A stretch of 63,165 nt of DNA, counting the filler, from Syncephalis fuscata S228 (lineage: Eukaryota > Fungi > Zoopagomycota), in assembly GCA_025786725.1 (NCBI GenBank). It is 6 parts of 6 records of this genome, joined end to end, with 100 filler letters (N's around TTAATTAATTAA, not from the genome) between each part and the next. Parts side by side here need not be neighbours in the genome. Positions count along the whole stretch, not along the records: positions 46,302 to 59,154 come from JAHLTZ010000258.1; 5 more parts are not named here. One strand, written 5' to 3'. A program made the position numbers and the translations under genes. Positions 5,351 through 59,154 of this stretch are shown here, one piece after another. The notes beneath the pieces were generated by a model that saw only the letters and a program-made list of their open reading frames with translations, did no database searches and was not told the origin of the DNA. Within the stretch, counting starts at the first letter, position 1; the number at the start of each line of letters is the position of its first letter.

Positions 5351-5819
5351 TTTAGCGAATAAAATAGAACGAATAGAAGATTGACGTAAAAGGCTAGAGA
5401 CACGATGTGCTAAAAAGGCGCTAGTATAACCGCTATCTGATGAATAGGAAGTTGTAGTAATTATAGAACTGAATCGGCTGGGATTTCGACATTTATATAG
5501 ACTAGACCAATGTTTTTGCTTGGTTGTCCCAGATTGGAAAAACAAAAAAAAACAGAGGCGAGTATGCCGATGATAGCTCTGTGAATAGGCAAGAGAACTG
5601 CAACAGAACGGCATCCTGTAGTAGCATAATTTGCGCAAAGAAAACGAAGTCAGTGCCAAAGTTGTTCCGCCATACGACTATCTCGGCATTCCCGTTACAC
5701 TTACTCTAGTTCCCCTTTTGAACGGAAACGTTCGGTGTATATGGCCAATAACAAGGACCCCTTTTTCTTATCTACTCATAAGCTAGCCAGTAGTCAGTTA
5801 AGGAGGAGGAAAACAGCTC

Positions 5820-6290
5820 ATCAGATAACTGTAGTATTGTCATTTGTTACACGTGAAGCATTCGTACAAGTATGTACATCATGATCAAAATACACCCAAG
5901 AACAATGTTCAATAACTTTACTTGTAGCCGAATAAACCGGTCAATGTACAGACATAGCCATTGAGACTAGCATAGAAGAGTGGGAGCTAACAAGGCCATC
6001 CAATACATTTATTATTAGCGTGTACTACTTTCCTATATAGAGCTATCGTGTAGAACTTTCCCAGCTGCATCTGATATGGAATATAGAATCAGATATTCCA
6101 AAATAGTAGTACAGGTCGGGTATTGCCGGAAGCTTCCTGGTCAATTTAATGGATAGCGCAGTACTAGCTTTATGATAGAGCATTTGTTGTTAATAGAGAA
6201 CGTACGCGATTGGTCAAGCTGGACTTTGATGGAATATTCGCTGCTCATACGAGTCACTACATATCTGATAATTGGTTAACATTATCAGAT
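5820..6290. promoter_or_regulatory. Cluster of iron-responsive GATA-factor (SreA-type) ATCWGATAA sites
   Basis: ATCAGATAA 5820-5828, ATCTGATAA 6263-6271 and inverted TTATCAGAT 6282-6290, with near matches at 6069 and 6088. All lie upstream of the siderophore synthetase. Confidence 0.6.
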
Positions 6291-6462: not shown

Positions 6463-7755
6463 CTATTCTTTATTTTTCTTGCGCTTTTCCTTCTTATTCT
6501 TCTTAGTCTTCTTATCCTTCTTCTTCTTTGTAACATCCTTTGTATCAGTATCGCTATCTCGCTGACGCTTTTTCTTTTTGGTCATGCACATTGATGCTTC
6601 TTGACTTTGTTGCGACGCTAGTACCTCGTTTTTGGGTAATAAATGATCATCCAATGATGCTAGCGTAACATTCGTTGTAACTGTCTTAGTACTTTTAGCA
6701 GTAACCGTAGCATTAGTTGCGGCCAATACTTCTACACGTGCTAACTTCGCTGGCTGTTCTACACGTGCACCTTTACGCGCTGTACGACCTTCACAAGCAG
6801 CGAATAACTCTGCATCCGTAATACGCATACTATAGTCACGTCCATTATCGTCGTCGTCAGATTCGTTGTTGTTATTGTTAGAATCGTTAGAATCGTCAGA
6901 GTCACACGTGTCTTTAGAAGTAGCCTCTGTTATCAATGTTGTTTTTTTAGAAGCACTAATAATAGACTATGTTAATATTCATTTATACTTGCAGTCAATA
7001 ATACTTACAATGTTGCGTTTAAGCCACCATTGGCACTGGCTACAAATGTACCACGCATCCAAAATGGCATTGATGCTTTTGTTGTAGCTTTTGTTGTTGT
7101 TGTTACAGTAGCTTCTGTTTCACTATCAGTATCTGCTTTATCGTTAACATCGGCTTCTACTTTCTTCTTGTCTTTCTTTTCCTTCTTCTTTTCCTTTTTC
7201 TTCTTTTCCTTCCTCTCCTCTTCTTTCTTTTCTTCTTTCTTCTCTTTCTTGTGCTTCGATGGACGTTCAGTGCTAATAATACCCATACGATTTCGTTCAG
7301 CACCACCTTTGCCTGTTGTACTCAACATTACCTATCATAATTAATCAATAAATACTATATTCACTATAATGCTCCATTCTACTTACTCCCTCGTCACCTT
7401 TCTCCACTTTAATGGCACTCGAACTCTTGTTGTACACATGATCCCACCAAGCAAATCCCCATGTATCACTGCCAGACCCCAACTATACATATAGTTAACT
7501 CTCTATCCATCTAATATTTACTAGAACTAGTTATCTCCACCTACTCCTTTAGCATCATCCTTTTTAGTAATTGATATGGCTCTAGTAATGCCTTCGCCTT
7601 CACGACCTAGACCTGCACCACTGTTTGTATTATTTAGTATGAACTAGTGAATTATTGTATAGCAATAACTAGATTACTTACGTTTTCCAACCATACTTGG
7701 ATAATTGCCGTGTAGCAAAATCACCATAACGATTCTCATTAGAAGGTACCGTCAT
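6463..7755 (-). CDS. G-patch domain nucleolar protein (GPATCH4/Tma23-like); multi-exon
   Basis: N-terminal FATRQLSKYGW..GAGLGREGEGI G-patch, FAWWDHVYN, KKEKK-rich tract and ITDAELFAACEGRTARKGAR. Confidence 0.8.
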
Positions 7756-46201: not shown

Positions 46202-46374
46202 NNNNNNNNNNNNNNNNNNNNNNNNNNNNNNNNNNNNNNNNNNNNTTAATTAATTAANNNNNNNNNNNNNNNNNNNNNNNNNNNNNNNNNNNNNNNNNNN
46301 NTTGAAAACCTTTACACTCGCCACTTTACCATTTTTAAGCCACTTAAAGTTATAGACCAAGAATATCATTTACC

Positions 46375-47395
46375 ATGATGCTATTTGAAAACAAGATCGC
46401 TATTCCCGCTGTTGTTGCTGCGCTACTGCTGGTATCGACTATACAGGATGTTGCCGAAGCAGAAAAATTAACAATCCGCAATGAAGAAGGCCAAGTGATA
46501 CAAAATCCCACTGGATGGTATGAAGGTAAGCAATTGTTTATGCTATGTTGCAGTAATATTAATTATCCTATAGATCAACAAGGCAAATCGTTTTTTGGAT
46601 ATAAAGCTGGAAAAGCGGGAGTATTTGGCGACCTTAGCCTTACTGTTGCCAACAAGGGTGCACATACTTTTGCCCATGAGCTCGGTATAGGAGCTGTTGG
46701 CGTATTAGTTAAAACACCTGTTATGATCCATTGTGCTAACGCTGGTGGCCACCAAGACTTTCCTTTTAATGTTTACCAAGTAAGTAGGACAAATTATAGC
46801 AATTTTGTTAAGATACACATCTAATTGAATGATAGAAATGCACGGATATAAAATACCAAAAGCTCCAAAAAGCCAAAGACATTATTGGTTGTCCTATCAA
46901 GCGGTACAATCTTGAAAATAACATTTCCTGTTATGCAACCAAGCCCAGTCGAATCAACGAGAGTCTACTAAATGTCGCTGATAGATATAAAAACCGTCCT
47001 AATCAAGACATGGCTATAAAGGGATTGATTGATCAAATCAAAGCAGGTAAGCAATTAAAATATTCTTAAATGCAAAGCTAATCCAATACACTATAGGAGC
47101 CATTTTCTTAAAAGAGTTGGGATGGTATTACAGGATCAATGAATCAACTGTGGAGCCTATCGATGACAAAAACGTTAGATTCGTCAAATTAGATAACTTG
47201 TTGCCGGTCAAGTCGCGTCTCTCCTTTAAAAGCAATTTATATAAGCAAACCGTCACCCAAATCGATAATGAAACAGAAAAATTTCTTATAAGCTTTTTGC
47301 AACGCTTTAATTTTGATGACGCCAAAATAGCAAATCTTCTTAAAACCGAGTTTAAAGATTTGTTTATTCAAAAATATAAGGGATTATTCTTTTAA
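46375..47395 (+). CDS. Secreted effector-like protein, paralogue of 28413-29519; 3 exons
   Basis: Signal peptide (AVVAALLLVSTIQDVAEA), with motifs and intron positions shared with the 28.4-29.5 kb copy. Confidence 0.7.
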
Positions 47396-49606
47396 TAGCG
47401 CTAATTTAGATCAATAAAGAACAACAGTTTAAATATAGTAGATGTATCAATATTGTTTGGATATCTAATTTGATTGGATTGCATTTTAACTCGTTATGCT
47501 TAAATGGTGACAAAAAGATTTATAACTCAAATAAACCGTCGATCAGTTTTTACTACTGAGAAGTGTGATTTGTTGATACAGTGTCATATTAACCCAATCA
47601 AATCAATCAGTATTAATTAATTAGCACTATTTCAATATCAAAATAAATATTAAATAATATTTCACGTTACTTATAATAAAATATAATAAATAAATGTTAA
47701 TCCATATTATTGTTGCTGTAAAGTATTCAAAGCATTATAATTTGATATTTAATATAACTCACCATCCAGTTCCATGTTTAGCAGAATAACAAATGTGTAG
47801 TTCAATCAAGTAAAGGATATCGATTTTGGTTGTTTGACACTAAATTACATAAGTCTACTTGTTAATTAATATATGGAAGCTATTCTACTTCACTCCCATA
47901 TTTTTTATTTACCCATTTCATACTTTTTTCTTAATACTTTTAAACACCATTAAACATTTATTTGTCGCTATTCCATGTATAAGATTGCATCCAGCATTAA
48001 CTAATTTATGTGTAATTATCAATACAATGCTGTAATTAATTAGTTATCTTTATTATTGCTTTAATATATATATTGTCATTATGCTATAAATTGTTTAAAT
48101 GTCATTTATTTAGTCAGATTGGCTATAAAGAAAGTGGCTGTTCAATAAACGACATTTATAATAATTATATTAATCTTGATCTTACATCACAAATATGCCC
48201 AAAATACAATAGTAGAATATTAGAAAATAGAAGAGACCATTCAGATGCAATAATCCATACTGTATGTAGATGCAACAACAACAAATGCATAATGACATGG
48301 GATTGCAATCATATGACTTCTATTAATATTTGATCAATCTTTCTACGCATAGCCAACAACAACGATAGTCGACCTCGTGAATTTCAAAGTAAGCAAATAA
48401 AAGCATTATGACTATGTTTTTTTTACATAGTAGCATTAACTTCAATTGAAACCAATTTTGCTTCGAGGACTCAAAATATGAGAGTCAAAGTAAAATTGGA
48501 AAGTTTTAAAAAAGTTTTAAATGCTTGATAAGAAAAGTTAATTGTAATAAACGCAACGAATTTTAATTTAAATGCTTATTTATTGAATAAATACAAACTA
48601 CTAATAAAGCAACTATTAAAATAAATAAACAAATAAAGTATAATGCAAACAAAAATAATATATTCAATAAATATTTTTTTAAAATTAAAATTTAACCAAC
48701 AAATAAATTAGATTGCCTTATTTAGAGTGTTTTAGATATCAGATTTAGCAATTAAACAAGTCTGAATTGCATAAAAGTATTATTGTTTCGACCAACTTAA
48801 ATTACTTAGCTAATTATCAAGCAAAAGTAAAGATATGCAAAATAAAGCCGTCAACATAGCATTTGTCGTTGATAAATTAGAACAATCTACTTGCAACATC
48901 CATTCCTAAATGCCACAAAATTCGCTTTAATATTCTAATTTAAAAGAGTCGTGGGACATGGCAAAAGAAGCTTAAAAGGGTGCTGTGACGGATCATTTAA
49001 ACCACTTGATTTGTATTAAATTTTATGATATTTTTATTAACTAAATAAAGATAGCCTTTTCGACAATATTAAGCGCACTATTGGTTGTTTAATGTTATTT
49101 GGCAGTTAACTCTAATAGCCTATGCCTTTTTGCCGTGTTTTATTAGAAAAGCGTCTTTATTTTAATTCAGTATAATATTGTTTGGCTATATGATAATAAT
49201 AGCTATGCTACTATTAATACCAATCTATGCCTATAGCTTACACGATATAATTATACACATTTTGTTATTAATTTAATTATTTGATTAATAGTTGTTATTA
49301 TTGAGTGCAAATAGAACATGATTATAGATATAGCAATTTGATTGTATATAATTAAGATGAAACCATAAGTTTATTATTATAAGCTTGCACAGTTGAATAG
49401 AAACAACTAGATGCAAACATGTTGGTAACATAATGATTCCATTGATTAAAGACTGGATAAACCGGAGCATTGGCCAAAACTTGATATATAAATAGACTGG
49501 ACGGCGTAGTTGTCAAATAATTTTTATTTCCACCAATTATATACCTAAAGTGTATTGGAATAGTGGTTTGATGGCACTACTAATGCTGATGTCTTGAAAC
49601 CATTGA

Positions 49607-52600
49607 TTATTGTTTATCTATAAATAAAAATATTGTCATATGATTAATTTATAAACCATTAATGCATAATGCTACTTACCGCCTATTAGTATTAAGTTAT
49701 TGATATACATGGTGTATAGCATGTGATTAGTACATATTTGGTTAATATACAATACCACTTACAATCTATTAATAATAAGTCATTGATACGCAATAAATAG
49801 TATGTAATTAGTTCATAGTCAGCTAATATACAATACCACTTCAAAGGAAAAAAGAAGAAAAAGACATCAAGAAAAATGACAACCCAGCAGCGTCAGCTTT
49901 ACTCAGAAAAAGTAACAAACAACATTGTGAAAACGATGGAAAGCGAAGCGGAGAAATTAAGAAAGGAAAGAGTATTGAAGCATTGTATCGGGGTACAGAT
50001 GACAAATGTTAACAGAATAGCAGAAGTCGCGCAGGCGATTGTTAAGAAATTAAAAGAAGGAAAAAAAATCAAGTACAGTATTGATAATGCAGCAGGGGAA
50101 TATGTGTTTAGCTTATTCTCTAAACAACAAGTAAACTTGATGGTGAGAGAAGGCTTTTATATTGGAGAAGAGCACATCAAAGTAAGAAGCTATGAAGGGC
50201 CAGCACCAATACCACTGAAAGTGATAGGGGTGGACGCGGCAACAGAGTTGGAGCACGTGGCACAAAAATTAAGAGAAGAATTGGGGCCAAACAGCAAAGT
50301 CTGGGCGATACACAGACTAGAAAAGAGATTCTATGACTGCGTATTAGAGTCTCCAATAGTAGTGTGTAAAGTCGAAGCAGACGAGAAGAAAATACCGACA
50401 AGAATAAGAGTGGGGGCGATGATGCTGAAGATCGGAAGAAGAGACGCGTGCTTCAGGTGCCACATGGTGGGACATATCGCAGTTGACTGTACATCGGGAA
50501 GCTGGCAGCAGAGAAACACAGCACCAGCCAACAATACAGTGACAGCTGAACACGAAAAACAAGAAGAACAGCAAACGCCAGAAGCAACAGATGTGAACGA
50601 AGACGAAGAAAATGAAATGGTGGAGGAAGAAGAAAGAGAAGAAGGAGAGGTAGCAGTAGCAGTAGTAGTAGTAGAAGAAGAAGAACAAGAACAACAAGAA
50701 GAACAAGAGTTACCATTACCAGCAAAGAAGGGAAGACAAAGAAAGACAAGACCAGTAGCAGGAATAAATCTAGCTAGCGGGGTGTGAAAACGCGACGCCA
50801 AACGGAAGAGCTAGAGAAGACAGCGAAGCAGCTAGCCATAGTAGCGGCAGCGGCCAAAAAGCCGGAAGAAGGAGCAGTAGAGACAATGGTGTGTGACATG
50901 GAAGAAGGAATGGCGCTGGAAGATGAGCCAGCAATGGGAGAGAGAGAAGAGGGAGAGGTAGAGGTAGAAGACGGAGAAGACGTAGAGATGACAAGTCAAC
51001 ACCAAACAGAAGAAGACTACAGCAATGAAAACGACATGGAAATGGACGATGCGACGCACACACCAGCTGAACGACTAAAGCAGCTGGGACAACTAAAGCC
51101 AAAAAAGACAACGCAAATGAGTATAAACACGTTTGCAGTCAACAGTCCAACAAGTCAAGCAATGGGGGCAGGGCAGAGTAAGTGGAGTCAGGCAGAAATG
51201 CCCGGCCAGAACTAATAATAGCATAAAGAATAAGAATAAGAAAAGAAAAAGATAAATAACAAGAATAATATGATAAAAAATAATAATAATACAATGAATA
51301 ATAATAAGAAAAATAACAAAAAGAAATTAACTAAAAATAGTATATCAAAAAATAAGATAATTAATAATAATACATTAAAAAAAAAAGAATAGATTAAATA
51401 ATAAGACAAAAAATATTAATATATTTAAAAATAATAAGATAAGAATAACAAAACATTTAAAACATTTAAAAATAATAATAAGACAAAAAATAATAAATAT
51501 AAAAAATGAATAATAATATTAATACATTAAATAATATCAATACATTAAATAGTACTAATAATAATAGACCCAATAATAGATCAAATAACGACTACAGGGA
51601 CACTAGCCAGCTCTTTGTGGGTACAAGTTCTAACTTTTATAGAGAACGGAGGCCAGGACCGGAGAAAATGAGATTTATACACTGGAACGTCACAGGGGCA
51701 ACAACAGGCAGCAAGATGGACCTACTATGGACAGCGTTGAATAAGCTGGACTTAGATTTTATAATACTAACTGAAACGCGTTGGACGGAAAGTATAGAAA
51801 AAGAAATAGCTAACAAAACTGGAATCAAAGGTAGATATATCCTAAAGACGGCAGGTGCGCCAGAAAGGTCAACACAAAGAGGCCACGCAAACTTTTATGG
51901 AGTAGCAATACTGATAAAGGTTGAGTGGGAGAAGCACATACAAGAAGTAGTCACAGTAAACAACAGAATGATTGGCATACGACTGGCATTCCGGGAAAGG
52001 GGACTGCTGGTAGTCGGGCTTCTGTACCCAACAAACAAGGGAAGAAGCAATCCGAGTGCAGCCAATCGCATGCTGACCGAGTTGAAGAAATGGGTGGATC
52101 AAGCGCGCCAGAAAAGAGCAGAAGTAGTGATAGGAGGCGACTTCAACGCCGTCCCACAGCCATGGCTGGACCGACAAGGGTACACAGATACAAGAGCAGA
52201 GTCAAGTATGCTGGAGTATCTGATGGCAACAAGAAGTATGGTCGATGTCTGGAGAAGACAGTACCCAGACATATACAAGTACACAAACACTATGCAACGA
52301 GAGAACGGAGTAGCGCGCGCCAGGCTAGACTTATTCCTGACAACAGATACGCTAGCGGATATGGTATCAGGGGTAGGAATAGAAGACGAAGAGGGGAGCG
52401 GAACGACGGGACAGCAAATAAACCAAGGAATATATAGCACACATCAACCGATAGTGTTGGAGCTGACCACGTCAATAATATTCCAGCGGGCAGGTGACAG
52501 GCTATGCCAACAACTGCCGCGCAAAATATTAAACAGACGAAAGGCTACAGAAGTGGATTGGATGAATTACACCTCAGCAACAGCTATAGGTTGGAATAGA

Positions 52601-55600
52601 ACAATTAAAGATGCGGTGGAGCAGACAAAAGAAGACGGCCAGCTTGAACACAACAGTATTCCATACTTAGATCGACTATGGGGAGCAATCGTCAGTCATC
52701 TGGTGCTGTGCGCTGATGACAAGCTGCCACATATCGTGATAAGAAGGAATAGGCCCAGTGATGAGCTGAGTCTACATCCGGTTCTGCAGACGACAAAAAG
52801 TCTGGCTAAAATACAAAAAGAAGATTTATCGGCAAGACAAAGATGTGAGCGAATAAAGCGACTAGCAAGACGTCATCCGTCGGTTACGCAGTTGGTGGAG
52901 CTGGCGGGACAACTAGAAGAGCATGCCTCGGTAGACGAGGTCAAAGGTCTGAAGACGAGACTAAGCAATCAGTACAACAGAGAGAAGAAAAAAGAACTAA
53001 ACGAAAAAATACGCGGCGCGACGATGAAAAGAAACCTACTGTTTCACACTGACTTAAAAGAGGTGTTGAAAAGAGTTTTGGAGAAGAATAAGCCACTACA
53101 GCAAATAACAGTGGTACAGACCAATGACTCGACTATCGAGGACCGGCCAGAAGAGGTACGCCGACTCACTCGAGACTACTTCACTCAGTGGATGGGTGCG
53201 AGACGTGGAACTAGCCCGCTAAACCACCCAACATGGTCAGGTAGCTATAGACCAATAGAGAGCATCGACCCTGCCATCTATAACGGTCTCATGGAACCAG
53301 TGGGGATAGAAGAGATGACAGCAGTGCTAAAGAGTCTGCCAAAAAACAAAGCACCAGGGGCATCAGGAGTGGTAAATGAAATGTTACAGAAAGCATGTGG
53401 GGAATTGCAGCAGGTGATGGCGGGAATTATTACAGCGTGTTTGCAAAAAGGGGATGTACCAACAGCCTGGAAGCATGGGGTAATAATACCAATACCAAAA
53501 ACGGCAAATTGGTGTGGAGACATGGCGCAGCTACGGCCAATCACATTATTGGAGACAATGCGCAAGCTATACTCAATAATAGTGACGAGACGGCTGCAAG
53601 AGGTAATGGAAAGAAATGGAGTGTTACAGGGGGGTAACTTCGGTTTTACAAGAGGCAATAAAACGACGGACTTTGTCCAGGTACTGAGAGCGGTCATGGA
53701 TGATTCCATTTGCCATGAACGTGGACTGGAAGTACTGTTGCTAGATGTGAAACGAGCATATGACTCAGTATCATGGCATAGCTTAGAGTGTTCGTTAAGA
53801 CGACTAAAAATACCAGAACAATATATAGGCTTACTAGCAAATATATTTGAACAACGAACAGCAACAGTACTAACAGCACACGGGCAAACAGAGGTACATC
53901 ATCCGGAATGCGGACTGGACCAGGGAGAAGTAAACTCACCATTATTATGGCTGACGTTCTACGACCCGCTACTAACAAAACTGAAAGATTCAGAACATGG
54001 GTATGTAATGAGAAGTATAGGAAATAACAACACACCGGTAAAGATCGCCCACGGTGCCTTCGCAGACGACCTGACACTACTGGCGGAAGACAGAGCGAAC
54101 CTCCAACAACTAGCAAATATCTGTCGCTCATTTTTTGAACTACACGACATAGAAGTGCACTGTGGAAAGACGATACACACAGCCAAAACATCATCTGGCA
54201 AAGCAGTAAACGCGGATCTACAACCAATTCGGTTGGCTGAGGGAGAAGTGGGCCTAGTTAGAATAGTACAGCCTCCACATGTACCATTTAGAATACTAGG
54301 CTGCTGGCTGTCGCTAGATGGATACAACAAAACAGCGTTTGATGTAATAGAAAAAGCAGTAGAAAACACATGTAAACTATTGCACCGAAAAGCAATAGAC
54401 AGTAATACAGCAGCTTACATTATCAATGCAGTAATAGTGCCGGCTGTGGTACACAAAACAGCAGCTAGTACTATGTCAGAAACACAGTGTACGACACTAG
54501 ATCGAAAATGGCTAAAAATACTTAAACGAAAAGCACATATGGCGAAGTCAGCACCAAACACGCTAATATGGTCAACGGATGGTATGAATGTAGCCAGAAC
54601 ACGCGACGCGATAGACGCAAGCCAGATCGGAGATCTACTGCGTAGACTGGATAGTCCAGGAGTGCTAGGGGAGACGGCCAGAGCGCAGGAAGAAGCAGTA
54701 AGGACAACAACATACAGCACTAGATCGCCATACAACAAGTACGTGGAAAGAAGGGAAACAAGACGGATATACGCGATGCACATAGCTCAACGACTACACG
54801 AGCGAGAAATCAGCGTGGTATGCGGCAGAGAACAACAACTGCCGACCGAAGTAGAAGAAGTATTGATACAAGATGTTGTGACACCAACAACATACAGAGA
54901 TATTCGAAAAGCCGTCAAACACTTTAAGTTGACCAGACTGAAAGATGTAATGCAAATAGCAGCAGACGGCACGCCAAAATTAAAGACATACACCCAAATC
55001 ACATATAGGAAGGCACCAAGGGCGGGGTCACCAAAATGGTACAAAGATCTGGAAAAGGAATGGCAGGTATGCGCAAGGGAAGCTATGGAAGTAGTGCGGA
55101 TAGCAAAGGGGATAAGGGAAAGGCGAGGAAAGCCTATAGACTTCACAGAGGAAAATTTAAGAGAGAGGAGTGTAGATGCAGAAGGAAACGAGTACGACTG
55201 GACAGAGGCACTAAGCCACGTCAGTGGCGAAGTAAACATTTGGACAGACGGATCGGTGATAGATCCAACAGGTAAGAATAGCAAAGGTGGATACGCAGCA
55301 ATAGCAATAGCGAGTACGGGTACACGGCCACTGGCAATTACAGCAGGAAAGTATGTCGGTCCACATTGCCACTCAGACATGGTGGAGGCGATGGCAATAG
55401 CGCATGCGCTATGCTGCGCACCACCGGACCGTGACTTAAAGCTGATAACCGACTCAATGACGTGCAAGGAGTGGTGGCGACAGTACGTGCTGAAGCCAGA
55501 GCCATGGCTAGACAGCAAAAGAAGAGCCACACCAACGTACAAGATATGGGAAAGGATAGCAGCAACGACAAGACAGAGAAGTGGTAAGACAGAGTTGCAG

Positions 55601-58600
55601 TGGACACGCGCACATGTAGGTACAAGAGGGAACGAGCTGGCGGACAAGGAAGCGAAAAAGGCGGCAGCTACTACAATAATAGCAGTACCAAGATGGACGC
55701 TGAACACGTCACCAGCTCCAGTACATCAGCACAACATGCTCATGTCAAAATTAAACACACTACTGGAGCCACGTAGTGCAGTTAAACGACAAAGCAAGGT
55801 AAGGCAAGAAAGAGCATTAAAAGAACTAATAGGAAGACAACACCCGGAGTTAGCACAAACACTACTTACCAGTACAAAAGTGGAGCTAACTATAAGAGAG
55901 GGGGTGAGACCGGAAAAAGACACGAGTAAGGAAGAGTATCAAATAGAGATGAAAAGAAGAGAGTTTGCGCTAAAAATGGCAGCCGGTATACTGCCAACTC
56001 TAGAAAGGCAAAATAAATGGTGTAAGGAGAGGTATAGAACTAATATGTGCTGCAGATGTAGTAGTGGAGAAGTAGAGACGTGGCGACATATAGTGAAGTG
56101 TGAAGGAAACGGACTAGATAGGGAAAAAGAAGCAAGAGATAAAATTAAAGACATGACAAGAAGAAAGGTGGAGTGGATAAATGAAAGAAGATCGAGAAAA
56201 GACCCGCCAATGAGACTGTTAAATGTGGGGGAGGTGGCTGAATCTATTGTCCCAGATCAGCCAATCAGCAACACCGGATTTCTATTAGGATTGGTGAGCC
56301 CACAAACACTATACAGTATGAAAAGAGAGGGGGTACGCGAAGAAGAAAGAAGAGAACTAATAAAAACAGCAACAAAGACGGCATTGGACTTCGTATGGAA
56401 GAAGATATGGAAGACAAGATGCAAGCAAGTGGACGAAGCAATAGGAAGATGGAAAACAGTACGTACCGACACACAAATAGCAGGTCAACCAGAACCACAA
56501 GAAGGTCCGGCAACAAACGCTGAAGGCCAGAGAGGCCTGAGGCAAATTTATACCTGGGACCACATCAATAAAATGGCGTTCGACGTCGAACGCCACCTAA
56601 AGATGGTGGCCCCCGCGTGGAGTCTATAGGACCCGGCTCCATGCAAAAACGTGGCGGTCCACTCGGTATCAACAATGCTACATTGTTTAATATTTTAAAA
56701 GCTTTATTATAATTAACGCGATAACAGCATGACACTGAGAAGCAGCACAAATTCTTTAATTATGCGCAGCGGGGGCCCACAAGCTCTTCAAAATAAAAAA
56801 ATAAAAATAATATACAATACCACGGGGGACGTTGCTAGCCCAGTTGGTAAGGCAGCGTCTCCCGAGCTGAAGGCTCCGGGTTCAAACCTCAGTTTGAATC
56901 AATCCTTAAGTGGAAAATCCCCCCCTCCAGTTTTCTCTAGTTAACAAATTGCAAACCAGAACCCAATAAGTAGGTCCGGAAACAAGACCTTGGCCAGAAT
57001 AGCCGAGGAAAACCCAATTGGGACCAACTTCAAGAGAATAGTGCTGTGTAGCACCATTTAAAGGAAGATGGCCCCCGTGTAAAATCTATATGGACCAGAT
57101 TTTGCGCAAAAACGTGGCAGTCCACCCGTTAAAAAGTTTGGAAAAAGTCCAAATATAGTGGGAAGCAGCGCAAATTCTTTAATTATGCGCAGCGGGGGCT
57201 CACAAGCTCTTCAAAATAAAATAAAATAATATACAATACCACTTACCATCTATTATATTAAGTCATTGGTACACAAAGTACATGACACATAATTAGTACA
57301 TATTTAGTTACCATATACTATCACTTACCATCTATTAATAATTTATTGGTACAATTAACAAATAGTATGTGATTAGTGCATAGTCAGTTAATATACAACA
57401 CATCTTACCACCTATTATATTGCGTCATTTATACACATAGTGCATGGCATATAATTAGTGCATAGTCAGTTAATATGCAATACCACGGGGGACGTTGCTA
57501 GCCCAGTTGGTAAGGCAGCGTCTCCCGAGCTGAAGGCTCCGGGTTCAAACCTCAGTTTGAATCAATCCTTAAGTGGAAAATCCCCCCCTCCAGTTTTCTC
57601 TAGTTAACAAATTGCAAACCAGAACCCAATAAGTAGGTCCGGAAACAAGACCTTGGCCAGAATAGCCGAGGAAAACCCAATTGGGACCAACTTCAAGAGA
57701 ATAGTGCTGTGTAGCACCATTTAAAGGAAGATGGCCCCCGTGTAAAATCTATATGGACCAGATTTTGCGCAAAAACGTGGCAGTCCACCCGTTAAAAGTT
57801 TGGAAAAGTCCAAATATAGTGGGAAGCAGCGCAAATTCTTTAATTATGCGCAGCGGGGGCTCACAAGCTCTTCAAAATAAAATAAAATAATATGCAATAC
57901 CACTTGCCCCCTATTAATATTGATTCATTGATACACATAGTACACGGCATATAATTAGTGCATAGTCAGTTAATATACAATACCACTTGCCCCCTATTAT
58001 ATTAAGTTGTTGATGCATATAATATATAATATATAATTAGTTTATAAGCCAGTAACATATGATGCTACTTACGGCCTGTTAGTATTAAGTTGTTAATGCG
58101 CATAGTATATGGCACATAATTAGCGCACATTCAGCTAATATACAATACCACTTACTAGCTATAATATTAAATTGTTGATGCGCACAACACATGGCATGTA
58201 ATTAGCGCAGTCAGTTAATATGCAATACAACTTACGATCTATTATATTAAGCCATTGGTACGCGCAGTACATGGCGCATAATTAGTACATATTTAGTTAA
58301 TATACAATATAACTTACTATCTATAGAATTAAATTGTTCATACACATAGTACATGGCACATATTAGGACATATTTAGTTACTGTACAATACAACTTACTG
58401 CCTATTATATTAAATTATTAATATACACAGTACATGGTATATAATTAGTCTATGTTCTATTGATATACAATAGAACTTACAAGCTATTAATATTAGGTTG
58501 TTAATGCACACAGTACGTGACATATAATTAGTGCATAGTAAGTTGATATAACATACAAATTACCAACTATTGATATTAAGTGTTAATGTACACAGTACAT

Positions 58601-59141
58601 AGTATATAATTAGTTTATGTCCTATTGATATACAATAAAACTTACGACCTATTAGTATTAAGTCATTGGTGCACACAATACATGACATATAATTAACACA
58701 TATTAAGTTAATGTACAATACCACTTACCGCCTATTATATTAATTTTAATATACACAGTACATGGCATATAATTAGTCTATTTTCTATTGATATACAATA
58801 GGACTTACAAGCTATTAATATTAAGTTGTTAATACACATGGTACATAACACATGATTAGTGTGTGATCAGTTAATACAAAATTCCACATACAAACTATTG
58901 ATATTAAGTGTTAATGTACACGGTACATGGTATATGATTAGTCTATGTCCTATTGATATACGATAGGACTTACAAGCTATTAATATTAAGTTTTTAATGC
59001 ACACGGTACATAACACATGATTAGTGTGTAGCTAGTCAATATACAACATTGCTTACGGTCTATTATATTAAGTTGTTAATATACACAGTACATGGCATAT
59101 AATTAGTGCATAGTCAGGTAATATACAATTTTACTTGCCCA
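49607..59141 (-). CDS. Micro-exon gene 2: Cys-rich peptide (5' exon(s) lost in gap)
   Basis: 21 three-nt exons plus a terminal exon starting at 49617. In phase 1 they give xDPFSCGLACNNPSRGGDDDCDKQ, then TAA at 49609-49607. Confidence 0.75.
49876..51215 (+). CDS. LINE ORF1 (gag-like, CCHC zinc knuckle, acidic tail), split by a frameshift at ~50784
   Basis: CFRCHMVGHIAVDC knuckle. ORFs 49876-50787 and 50784-51215 share EREEGEV-type motifs. Confidence 0.8.
51506..56629 (+). CDS. LINE ORF2: AP endonuclease, reverse transcriptase, RNase H and C-terminal CCHC
   Basis: APE: HWNV, LTET, GGDFNA, RLD. RT: KAPG, LRPITLL, DVKRAYDSV, GLDQGE.SP, FADD. RNase H: WTDGS, TDS, AHVG..GNELAD. C-terminal C.RC...ETWRHIVKC. 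Intact, 1707 aa. Confidence 0.95.
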   Translation: MNNNINTLNNINTLNSTNNNRPNNRSNNDYRDTSQLFVGTSSNFYRERRPGPEKMRFIHWNVTGATTGSKMDLLWTALNKLDLDFIILTETRWTESIEKEIANKTGIKGRYILKTAGAPERSTQRGHANFYGVAILIKVEWEKHIQEVVTVNNRMIGIRLAFRERGLLVVGLLYPTNKGRSNPSAANRMLTELKKWVDQARQKRAEVVIGGDFNAVPQPWLDRQGYTDTRAESSMLEYLMATRSMVDVWRRQYPDIYKYTNTMQRENGVARARLDLFLTTDTLADMVSGVGIEDEEGSGTTGQQINQGIYSTHQPIVLELTTSIIFQRAGDRLCQQLPRKILNRRKATEVDWMNYTSATAIGWNRTIKDAVEQTKEDGQLEHNSIPYLDRLWGAIVSHLVLCADDKLPHIVIRRNRPSDELSLHPVLQTTKSLAKIQKEDLSARQRCERIKRLARRHPSVTQLVELAGQLEEHASVDEVKGLKTRLSNQYNREKKKELNEKIRGATMKRNLLFHTDLKEVLKRVLEKNKPLQQITVVQTNDSTIEDRPEEVRRLTRDYFTQWMGARRGTSPLNHPTWSGSYRPIESIDPAIYNGLMEPVGIEEMTAVLKSLPKNKAPGASGVVNEMLQKACGELQQVMAGIITACLQKGDVPTAWKHGVIIPIPKTANWCGDMAQLRPITLLETMRKLYSIIVTRRLQEVMERNGVLQGGNFGFTRGNKTTDFVQVLRAVMDDSICHERGLEVLLLDVKRAYDSVSWHSLECSLRRLKIPEQYIGLLANIFEQRTATVLTAHGQTEVHHPECGLDQGEVNSPLLWLTFYDPLLTKLKDSEHGYVMRSIGNNNTPVKIAHGAFADDLTLLAEDRANLQQLANICRSFFELHDIEVHCGKTIHTAKTSSGKAVNADLQPIRLAEGEVGLVRIVQPPHVPFRILGCWLSLDGYNKTAFDVIEKAVENTCKLLHRKAIDSNTAAYIINAVIVPAVVHKTAASTMSETQCTTLDRKWLKILKRKAHMAKSAPNTLIWSTDGMNVARTRDAIDASQIGDLLRRLDSPGVLGETARAQEEAVRTTTYSTRSPYNKYVERRETRRIYAMHIAQRLHEREISVVCGREQQLPTEVEEVLIQDVVTPTTYRDIRKAVKHFKLTRLKDVMQIAADGTPKLKTYTQITYRKAPRAGSPKWYKDLEKEWQVCAREAMEVVRIAKGIRERRGKPIDFTEENLRERSVDAEGNEYDWTEALSHVSGEVNIWTDGSVIDPTGKNSKGGYAAIAIASTGTRPLAITAGKYVGPHCHSDMVEAMAIAHALCCAPPDRDLKLITDSMTCKEWWRQYVLKPEPWLDSKRRATPTYKIWERIAATTRQRSGKTELQWTRAHVGTRGNELADKEAKKAAATTIIAVPRWTLNTSPAPVHQHNMLMSKLNTLLEPRSAVKRQSKVRQERALKELIGRQHPELAQTLLTSTKVELTIREGVRPEKDTSKEEYQIEMKRREFALKMAAGILPTLERQNKWCKERYRTNMCCRCSSGEVETWRHIVKCEGNGLDREKEARDKIKDMTRRKVEWINERRSRKDPPMRLLNVGEVAESIVPDQPISNTGFLLGLVSPQTLYSMKREGVREEERRELIKTATKTALDFVWKKIWKTRCKQVDEAIGRWKTVRTDTQIAGQPEPQEGPATNAEGQRGLRQIYTWDHINKMAFDVERHLKMVAPAWSL
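56824..57226 (+). mobile_element. tRNA-derived SINE, copy 2, tandem with the LINE in the same intron
   Basis: Pol III A/B boxes and LINE-like 3' end. TSD at 56808-56823 and 57227-57242. Confidence 0.92.
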
Positions 59142-59154
59142 CTAATATGTTATA
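57227..59154 (-). repeat. Tandem array of ~80-83 bp intron + micro-exon units (continues at 49674-49839)
   Basis: Periodic ACTTAC/ACTTGC/ACATAC-NNN-CTA/CTG units of the same family as the 18.7-20.9 kb array. Confidence 0.92.
57487..57887 (+). mobile_element. tRNA-derived SINE, copy 3
   Basis: Nearly identical to copy 2. TSD variant TAATATGCAATACCAC on both sides (57471-57486, 57888-57903). Confidence 0.92.

Follow-up and report, generated by a model that had tools for sequence, protein, structure and literature searches.

Here we describe a long interspersed nuclear element (LINE) and a short interspersed nuclear element (SINE) of the mycoparasite Syncephalis fuscata (Zoopagomycota), which appear to insert repeatedly at one position within the repeated introns of a micro-exon gene family. 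We give this reading, in which a known kind of element uses a new class of target, a probability of about 0.85. The window, i.e. the whole stretch of 63,165 nt presented here, comes from strain S228 (assembly GCA_025786725.1), and the sequence analysed was its part at 46302-59154, derived from JAHLTZ010000258.1. Together with copies from elsewhere in the assembly, the sample consisted of five LINE and two SINE copies, that is seven insertions at six sites in five loci. All seven share a single 3′ junction register and lie on one strand. This kind of target has not been reported before for LINE or SINE elements.

On the plus strand of the analysed sequence, the LINE occupies 49840-56807 (6968 nt) and is followed by two non-coding SINE copies, SINE1 at 56824-57226 (403 nt) and SINE2 at 57487-57887 (401 nt), which differ by two 1-nt indels. 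The host is the 3′ part of a micro-exon gene on the minus strand (49300-59154), the 5′ end of which is located beyond the analysed sequence. The 16-nt repeat TAATATRCAATACCAC flanks the LINE, SINE1 and SINE2. The motif GTGRTATTGYATATTA was found exactly at 49824, 56808, 57227, 57471 and 57888, always on the minus strand, and 12 matches with up to two mismatches occur across the window, compared to 0.1 expected from shuffled sequences. The first copy of the target-site duplication (TAATATACAATACCAC, 49824-49839) corresponds to positions +5 to +20 of a host intron on the minus strand; the second (56808-56823) is common to the stacked LINE and SINE1, and the third (57227-57242) lies 3′ of SINE1. 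SINE2 is bordered by a G variant (TAATATGCAATACCAC), with the 5′ copy at 57471-57486 and the 3′ copy at 57888-57903. Within each insertion the two repeat copies are identical, carrying an A at the LINE/SINE1 site and a G at the SINE2 site, hence SINE2 did not arise as a duplicate of SINE1. The presence of three repeat copies around the stacked LINE and SINE1 indicates that one site was hit twice.

On the minus strand, every unit of the host array reads AG-NNN-GTAAGT, so that the repeat equals intron positions +5 to +20 and the exon and its donor remain contiguous. The first-pass annotation had placed the same 16-nt intron segment around four antisense insertions at two loci, with a LINE and a SINE stacked between three duplication copies. 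Exact repeat copies were indeed present at all insertions in 46302-59154, and the stack was recovered at 49824, 56808 and 57227. Three of the four insertions (one LINE, two SINEs) belong to 46302-59154, whereas the third SINE and the second locus lie outside it. The motif given at the time was likewise found as a repeat, except that its ambiguous position R is always G in 46302-59154.

Four additional LINE copies (L005, L006, L007 and L008) were reached via annotated protein fragments of GCA_025786725.1, with the S. fuscata protein KAI9594068.1, 97% identical to the C-terminal 200 aa of open reading frame 2 (ORF2) of the window LINE, as the entry. They are located on different contigs, which brings the host loci to five contigs with unrelated neighbouring genes, and are 98.9-99.9% identical to the window copy according to local BLAST. 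All of them reside in arrays of ~82 bp units, in antisense orientation and with the 3′ junction at one position of the unit. Two copies are 5′ truncated, L005 starting at LINE position 5732 with a duplication of 19 nt and L007 starting at position 6153 with a duplication of 17 nt containing one mismatch. The other two start at position 1 and are full length: L006, with extra sequence of the 5′ untranslated region (UTR) and a 16-nt duplication, and L008, with a 17-nt duplication and both ORF1 (447 aa) and ORF2 (1707 aa) open. Given their differing truncations, tails and duplications, L005 to L008 are independent, site-specific insertions. The site specificity proposed initially thus extends to the flanks of all four additional copies, which show the same intron register, the antisense orientation and duplications of their own.

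The same pattern might be imagined to arise from only one or two insertions that were later multiplied, together with the units around them, through tandem or segmental duplications or through gene conversion between arrays, in which case no specificity would be needed. The arrays do evolve by tandem duplication (periods of 165, 328 and 493 bp), and SINE1 and SINE2 are nearly identical. However, each insertion possesses its own matched duplication, distinguished by A or G in the window and by different sequences at all other loci; the LINE copies are truncated at different 5′ points and have tails and duplications of different lengths, and they are spread over five contigs among unrelated genes. 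Multiplication after insertion is therefore hardly credible.

Empty sites on the gene-sense strand read ...AYATTA/RNTGAYTAT..ACTAAT, where the slash marks the first-strand nick, fixed between intron positions +20 and +21. At its opposite end the duplication is less constant, reaching to between intron +1 or +2 and +5. The core ATTA-NN-TGAYTAT has 14 occurrences in ~96 kb of S. fuscata sequence; 13 of them fall within arrays, all on the gene-sense strand, and five are occupied. Two unit types alternate in the window array, and all three of its insertions are in units of the TAATAT type. At the L007 site the 5′ end of the intron was lost and the downstream core was kept, which suggests that recognition takes place mainly around and downstream of the nick.

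These observations also bear on the possibility that the endonuclease nicks AT-rich DNA loosely, as in L1, and that copies merely survived in abundant, tolerant, AT-rich arrays, with selection acting after insertion. The genome is AT-rich, few copies were sampled, and host genes bearing insertions often look dead, as would be consistent with retention in junk. Yet 7/7 insertions share one 3′ junction in the 82-bp unit and one orientation; under uniform placement, we estimate the probability of six sites falling into one register at ~(1/82)^5. Survival bias cannot set register and strand within an intron, the LINE and SINE1 used the identical site twice, and the L007 site retains only the downstream core. 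We regard selective survival as very improbable, and specificity for the site as strongly supported, albeit in a small sample.

The host gene family was traced in the window (49608-49839, 57243-57486 and 57904-59154, minus strand) and at L005:8500-12520, L006:3990-13490 and L007:8330-11090. In the window gene, 3-nt exons recur 21 times at intervals of 80-83 nt, within 49680-49839, 57243-57486 and 57904-59154. Its terminal exon starts at 49618 and contains a phase 1 stop at 49610-49608, followed by a 3′ UTR block conserved among paralogues. The 3-nt exons are separated by near-identical introns of ~79 nt. When the units were aligned on the minus strand, the NNN between AG and GT formed the most variable columns, while GTAAGT, the ACTAAT box and the AATAG end were the most conserved ones. 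In the array at 57904-59154, the higher-order periods given above result from two alternating unit types.

At L005, L006 and L007 the array opens with a TATA-like box and a C/A-rich leader; the first exon then encodes a signal peptide and a short basic piece, reading MRFFIAVVCTLVVAFVAGIIMVDA RPDSVRI in L006. A GTATGT donor closes this exon after the first base of a codon (phase 1). It is followed by 20-31 exons of 3 nt, with three of 6 nt, then by the terminal exon and the 3′ UTR block conserved among paralogues; the micro-exons of intact copies measure either 3 or 6 nt. In phase 1 each codon would be split over two exons. Across the three intact arrays, this phase contains no stops, compared to a mean of 3.3 in exon-order shuffles (P=0.012), and 13 cysteines, compared to 6.2 (P=0.0003). 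In 4/4 genes the terminal exon is read for 1-4 codons before the frame closes. The joined peptide models were translated locally and by hand; the predicted products are short, acidic, cysteine-rich peptides, in L006 with a KR site after the pro-piece. A phase 0 reading, in which the 3-nt exons are whole codons and yield a hydrophobic string, was dropped because exon 1 ends in phase 1 and phase 1 is stop-free and cysteine-rich. An intronless paralogue at L007:13193-13456 (minus strand) has the leader, the signal peptide, a KPALIRRV piece and the 3′ UTR block of the micro-exon genes. Its contiguous, cysteine-rich ORF of 87 aa supports the phase 1 reading of the arrays. The intronless paralogue could be the ancestral form or the product of intron loss mediated by reverse transcription.

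Alternatively, the 82-bp arrays could be a satellite and not genes, the LINE and SINE being satellite-specific like the known LINEs that target microsatellites or other tandem repeats, and the term intron would then be a misnomer. The deposited annotation has no gene over the arrays, their status as genes is predicted from sequence, and the unit structure resembles that of satellites. This view is quite unlikely, since a satellite would account neither for arrays that begin with a TATA-like box, a 5′ UTR, an ATG, a signal-peptide exon and a GTATGT donor, nor for their conserved terminal exon and 3′ UTR. Moreover, conservation is highest in the splice-signal columns and lowest in the 3-nt spacers, the spacers measure 3 or 6 nt in intact copies, the phase set by exon 1 is stop-free and cysteine-rich, and the intronless paralogue encodes a similar peptide. 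That the arrays are genuine genes of the micro-exon type is well supported by their sequence, and they would be spliced at the predicted boundaries. At the sequence level, very short exons in multiples of 3, keeping one frame and encoding a putatively secreted product, identify a micro-exon gene family, in agreement with the earlier proposal that the target is a repeated intron of such a family, here with cysteine-rich peptides as predicted products. A metagenome scan for the AATAG-NNN-GTAAGT..TATTGTATATTA unit gave no match. The host gene family is more unusual than the transposon itself.

The LINE in the window lacks ~26-33 nt of 5′ UTR that are present in the L006 and L008 copies. Its ORF1 (49876-50787, plus strand, 303 aa) gave a weak CCHC match and is shortened by a 1-nt difference, one G fewer in the G run at ~50779 than in L006 and L008, in which ORF1 is 446-447 aa long. 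The missing G may reflect a genuine defect of the element or a mistake of the assembly in the homopolymer. ORF2 (51506-56629, plus strand) is intact with 1707 aa and contains apurinic/apyrimidinic endonuclease (APE), reverse transcriptase (RT) and RNase H domains, matching Exo_endo_phos (PF03372, 8.3e-12, aa 60-292), RVT_1 (PF00078, 3.7e-22, aa 663-893) and RNase_H (PF00075, 4.7e-11) in Pfam. Among solved structures, R2 and L1 ORF2p match the RT at 1e-21 to 1e-18. The order APE then RT is that of an APE-type non-LTR (long terminal repeat) retrotransposon, and the hallmarks of target-primed reverse transcription are present, namely duplications of 16-19 nt, variable 5′ truncation, an A-rich tail and no LTRs. 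Between ORF1 and ORF2 lies a long AAT-rich low-complexity spacer (51223-51566), the length of which differs among copies. The element ends with a 3′ UTR and an (A4-6T)n tail of variable length among copies; folding Z-scores of the 3′ UTR were modest (-2.4 to +0.3). An unrelated sequence of ~315 bp (L006:8084-8410) with the 12-nt direct repeat GGTTACRCAGTT on both sides, probably another small mobile element, splits the L006 copy. Taken together, these features describe a young, sequence-specific non-LTR retrotransposon that has a SINE partner and is probably still active.

The partnership is evident from the 3′ ends. The 3′ ~330 nt of the SINE align with the 3′ end of the LINE and have the same (A4-6T)n tail type; the common region includes GCAAAAACGTGGCRGTCCAC and a block of ~55 nt just ahead of the tail, and the tail sequence shared by the LINE and the SINEs is GCGCAGCGGGGGCYCACAAGCTCTTC. 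A short non-coding element with a LINE-matching 3′ end and 16-nt duplications is what a SINE mobilized by a partner LINE looks like. A metagenome scan with the common tail gave no match. In the head of SINE1 we spotted by eye the A-box-like TAGCCCAGTTGG and the B-box-like GGTTCAAACC motifs. ARAGORN detected no transfer RNA (tRNA) in the SINE head, and Rfam gave no tRNA match for the head alone even at E<=10, so that a tRNA origin of the head is unsupported by either tool.

We propose that target-primed reverse transcription places both the LINE and the SINE at a single position of a repeated spliceosomal intron. The first nick would cut the gene-sense strand following ...ATATTA, at intron +20/+21 in the core ATTA/NNTGAYTAT, where the A/T-rich (A4-6T)n tail would be primed. 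A second nick 16-19 nt upstream, at intron +1 to +5, would generate the duplication. The site is presumably read by the APE domain, as in R1- and Tx1-type elements, and the RNA tail (UAAAA-type) may pair with TAATAT at the target and aid recognition. Such pairing could involve the TAAT with which the duplication begins, which leaves the nick position ambiguous by 1-3 nt. With strand and site fixed, every copy becomes antisense to the host gene. With an insertion at +20/+21, the exon stays joined to intron +1 to +20 on the upstream side, as does the branch-site-like box to the acceptor on the downstream side. The sparing of the donor claimed initially thus holds insofar as exon and donor stay contiguous, but it is a geometric result of the nick position and as such no sign of adaptation. 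Introns of this fungus measure about 50-80 nt; the insertions would lengthen the affected ones from ~79 nt to 0.5 to 7.5 kb. A redundant intron as target would lower the cost to the host.

Several points weigh against the proposed specificity for micro-exon introns or limit its reach. The five LINE and two SINE copies were found via annotated fragments, and off-target copies may exist; both SINE copies come from 46302-59154, which makes for a small SINE sample. The L007 target without the 5′ end of the intron means that the recognition sequence is only roughly defined, and splicing of the arrays, whether empty or filled, is predicted. Regarding the clade, the APE domain weakly matches L1-EN chimeras (E=0.0025). 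Finally, disabling changes were noted in 2-3/5 of the host genes. The L006 host gene is intact by ORF. The L005 host gene has a 1-nt frameshift in the signal-peptide exon; in the L007 host gene ATA replaces ATG, one exon is 2 nt long and an acceptor is lost; and the L008 array is decayed. These defects render the idea of a harmless harbour doubtful, and the tolerance of insertions is more safely attributed to redundancy within the family.

A further-reaching idea, which we consider unlikely, is an evolutionary coupling of the LINE/SINE pair to the micro-exon family, in which the conserved intron core (ATTA/NNTGAYTAT by the branch-site-like ACTAAT box) would be the only niche of the pair and its RT and insertions would shape the family. 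If so, insertions could silence or diversify individual peptide genes and seed recombination between arrays, and intron loss mediated by RT could have produced the copy at L007:13193-13456 from cDNA. Independently of such coupling, an APE-type LINE and a co-specific SINE with a ~13-nt core in a spliceosomal intron of a protein-coding family would widen the range of targets available to these elements. Target-specific LINEs are natural models for site-directed, RNA-templated DNA insertion, and the LINE endonuclease with its intron target would form a compact pair for in vitro work. The predicted genes, in which nearly every codon would be split by a ~79-nt intron, would strain the accepted limits of intron-definition splicing and are missed by current annotation.

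A neighbour gene at 46375-47395 (plus strand), made up of four exons and introns of 48-56 nt, has as its product a ~290-aa protein that carries a signal peptide and for which searches in Pfam and the Atlas gave no identity.

Exact look-ups returned no record identical to ORF1 or ORF2 of the window LINE. A HMMER whole-library search with ORF2 yielded no further S. fuscata fragments, with 48% identity for the best match, and a further word-index search returned metagenome relatives only (41-52% identity). The named relatives nearest to the full-length ORF2 are a Geosiphon protein and Trypanosoma ingi-type RTs (22-28% identity). In a comparison with solved structures, the APE domain did not match the R1Bm or TRAS1 endonucleases. 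The closest full-length relative, on a GC-rich Logan contig (48-55% identity), has a conserved GGGCCCACAGCT motif followed by a terminal (AAACCTC)n-like repeat (L001:5990-6023), where the contig itself ends. A distant relative from JGI metagenomes, P0003 (~35% identity), starts immediately behind a tRNA-Ala(AGC) gene, and in two contigs the 3′ half of the tRNA is repeated after the element (L003:299-372 and 7283-7320; L004:5573-5612). L003 contains two LINE copies in tandem. The association of P0003 with tRNA-Ala suggests that site specificity is common in this lineage. A literature search found no paper on these insertions in S. fuscata, nor on micro-exons in Zoopagomycota.

The sections of PMC4640811 on which we draw place APE-type target-specific LINEs in the Tx1 and R1 clades and set out the logic of a redundant target. 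The targets listed there are RNA genes, simple repeats, telomeres and other transposons, and no spliceosomal intron from a protein-coding gene family appears among them. Like target-specific members of the R1 and Tx1 clades (R1, TRAS/SART, Keno, Mutsu, Waldo and others), the Syncephalis element combines an APE and target-primed reverse transcription with a precise 3′ junction in a multicopy sequence, a variable 5′ junction and duplication, a fixed orientation, and tandem or stacked insertions. It differs from them in its target, a spliceosomal intron, and in its RNase H domain.

In stringent LINE-SINE pairs, such as eel UnaL2/UnaSINE1, the 3′ end of the SINE is copied from the partner LINE. 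The pair described here resembles them in the common 3′ end of ~330 nt with two highly conserved blocks, in the same tail repeat and in sharing duplication length and target. Unlike those pairs, the Syncephalis SINE also inherits strict site specificity, and its head is not recognizable as a tRNA. With Dictyostelium TRE and other LINEs associated with tRNA genes, the likeness is restricted to the relative P0003, which adjoins tRNA-Ala and was seen in two contigs, whereas the Syncephalis element has a different target and no association with tRNA genes.

Functional microexons were previously undescribed in filamentous fungi (PMC11121469). The host genes are reminiscent of the Schistosoma micro-exon genes (PMC10526429), with which they share predicted secreted products, runs of very short symmetric exons in multiples of 3, and organization as a multicopy, variable family. 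In contrast to those genes, the host is a fungus, almost all of the predicted exons are exactly 3 nt long, and the introns are short (~79 nt) and arranged in near-identical tandem units, while those of Schistosoma are long and unique.

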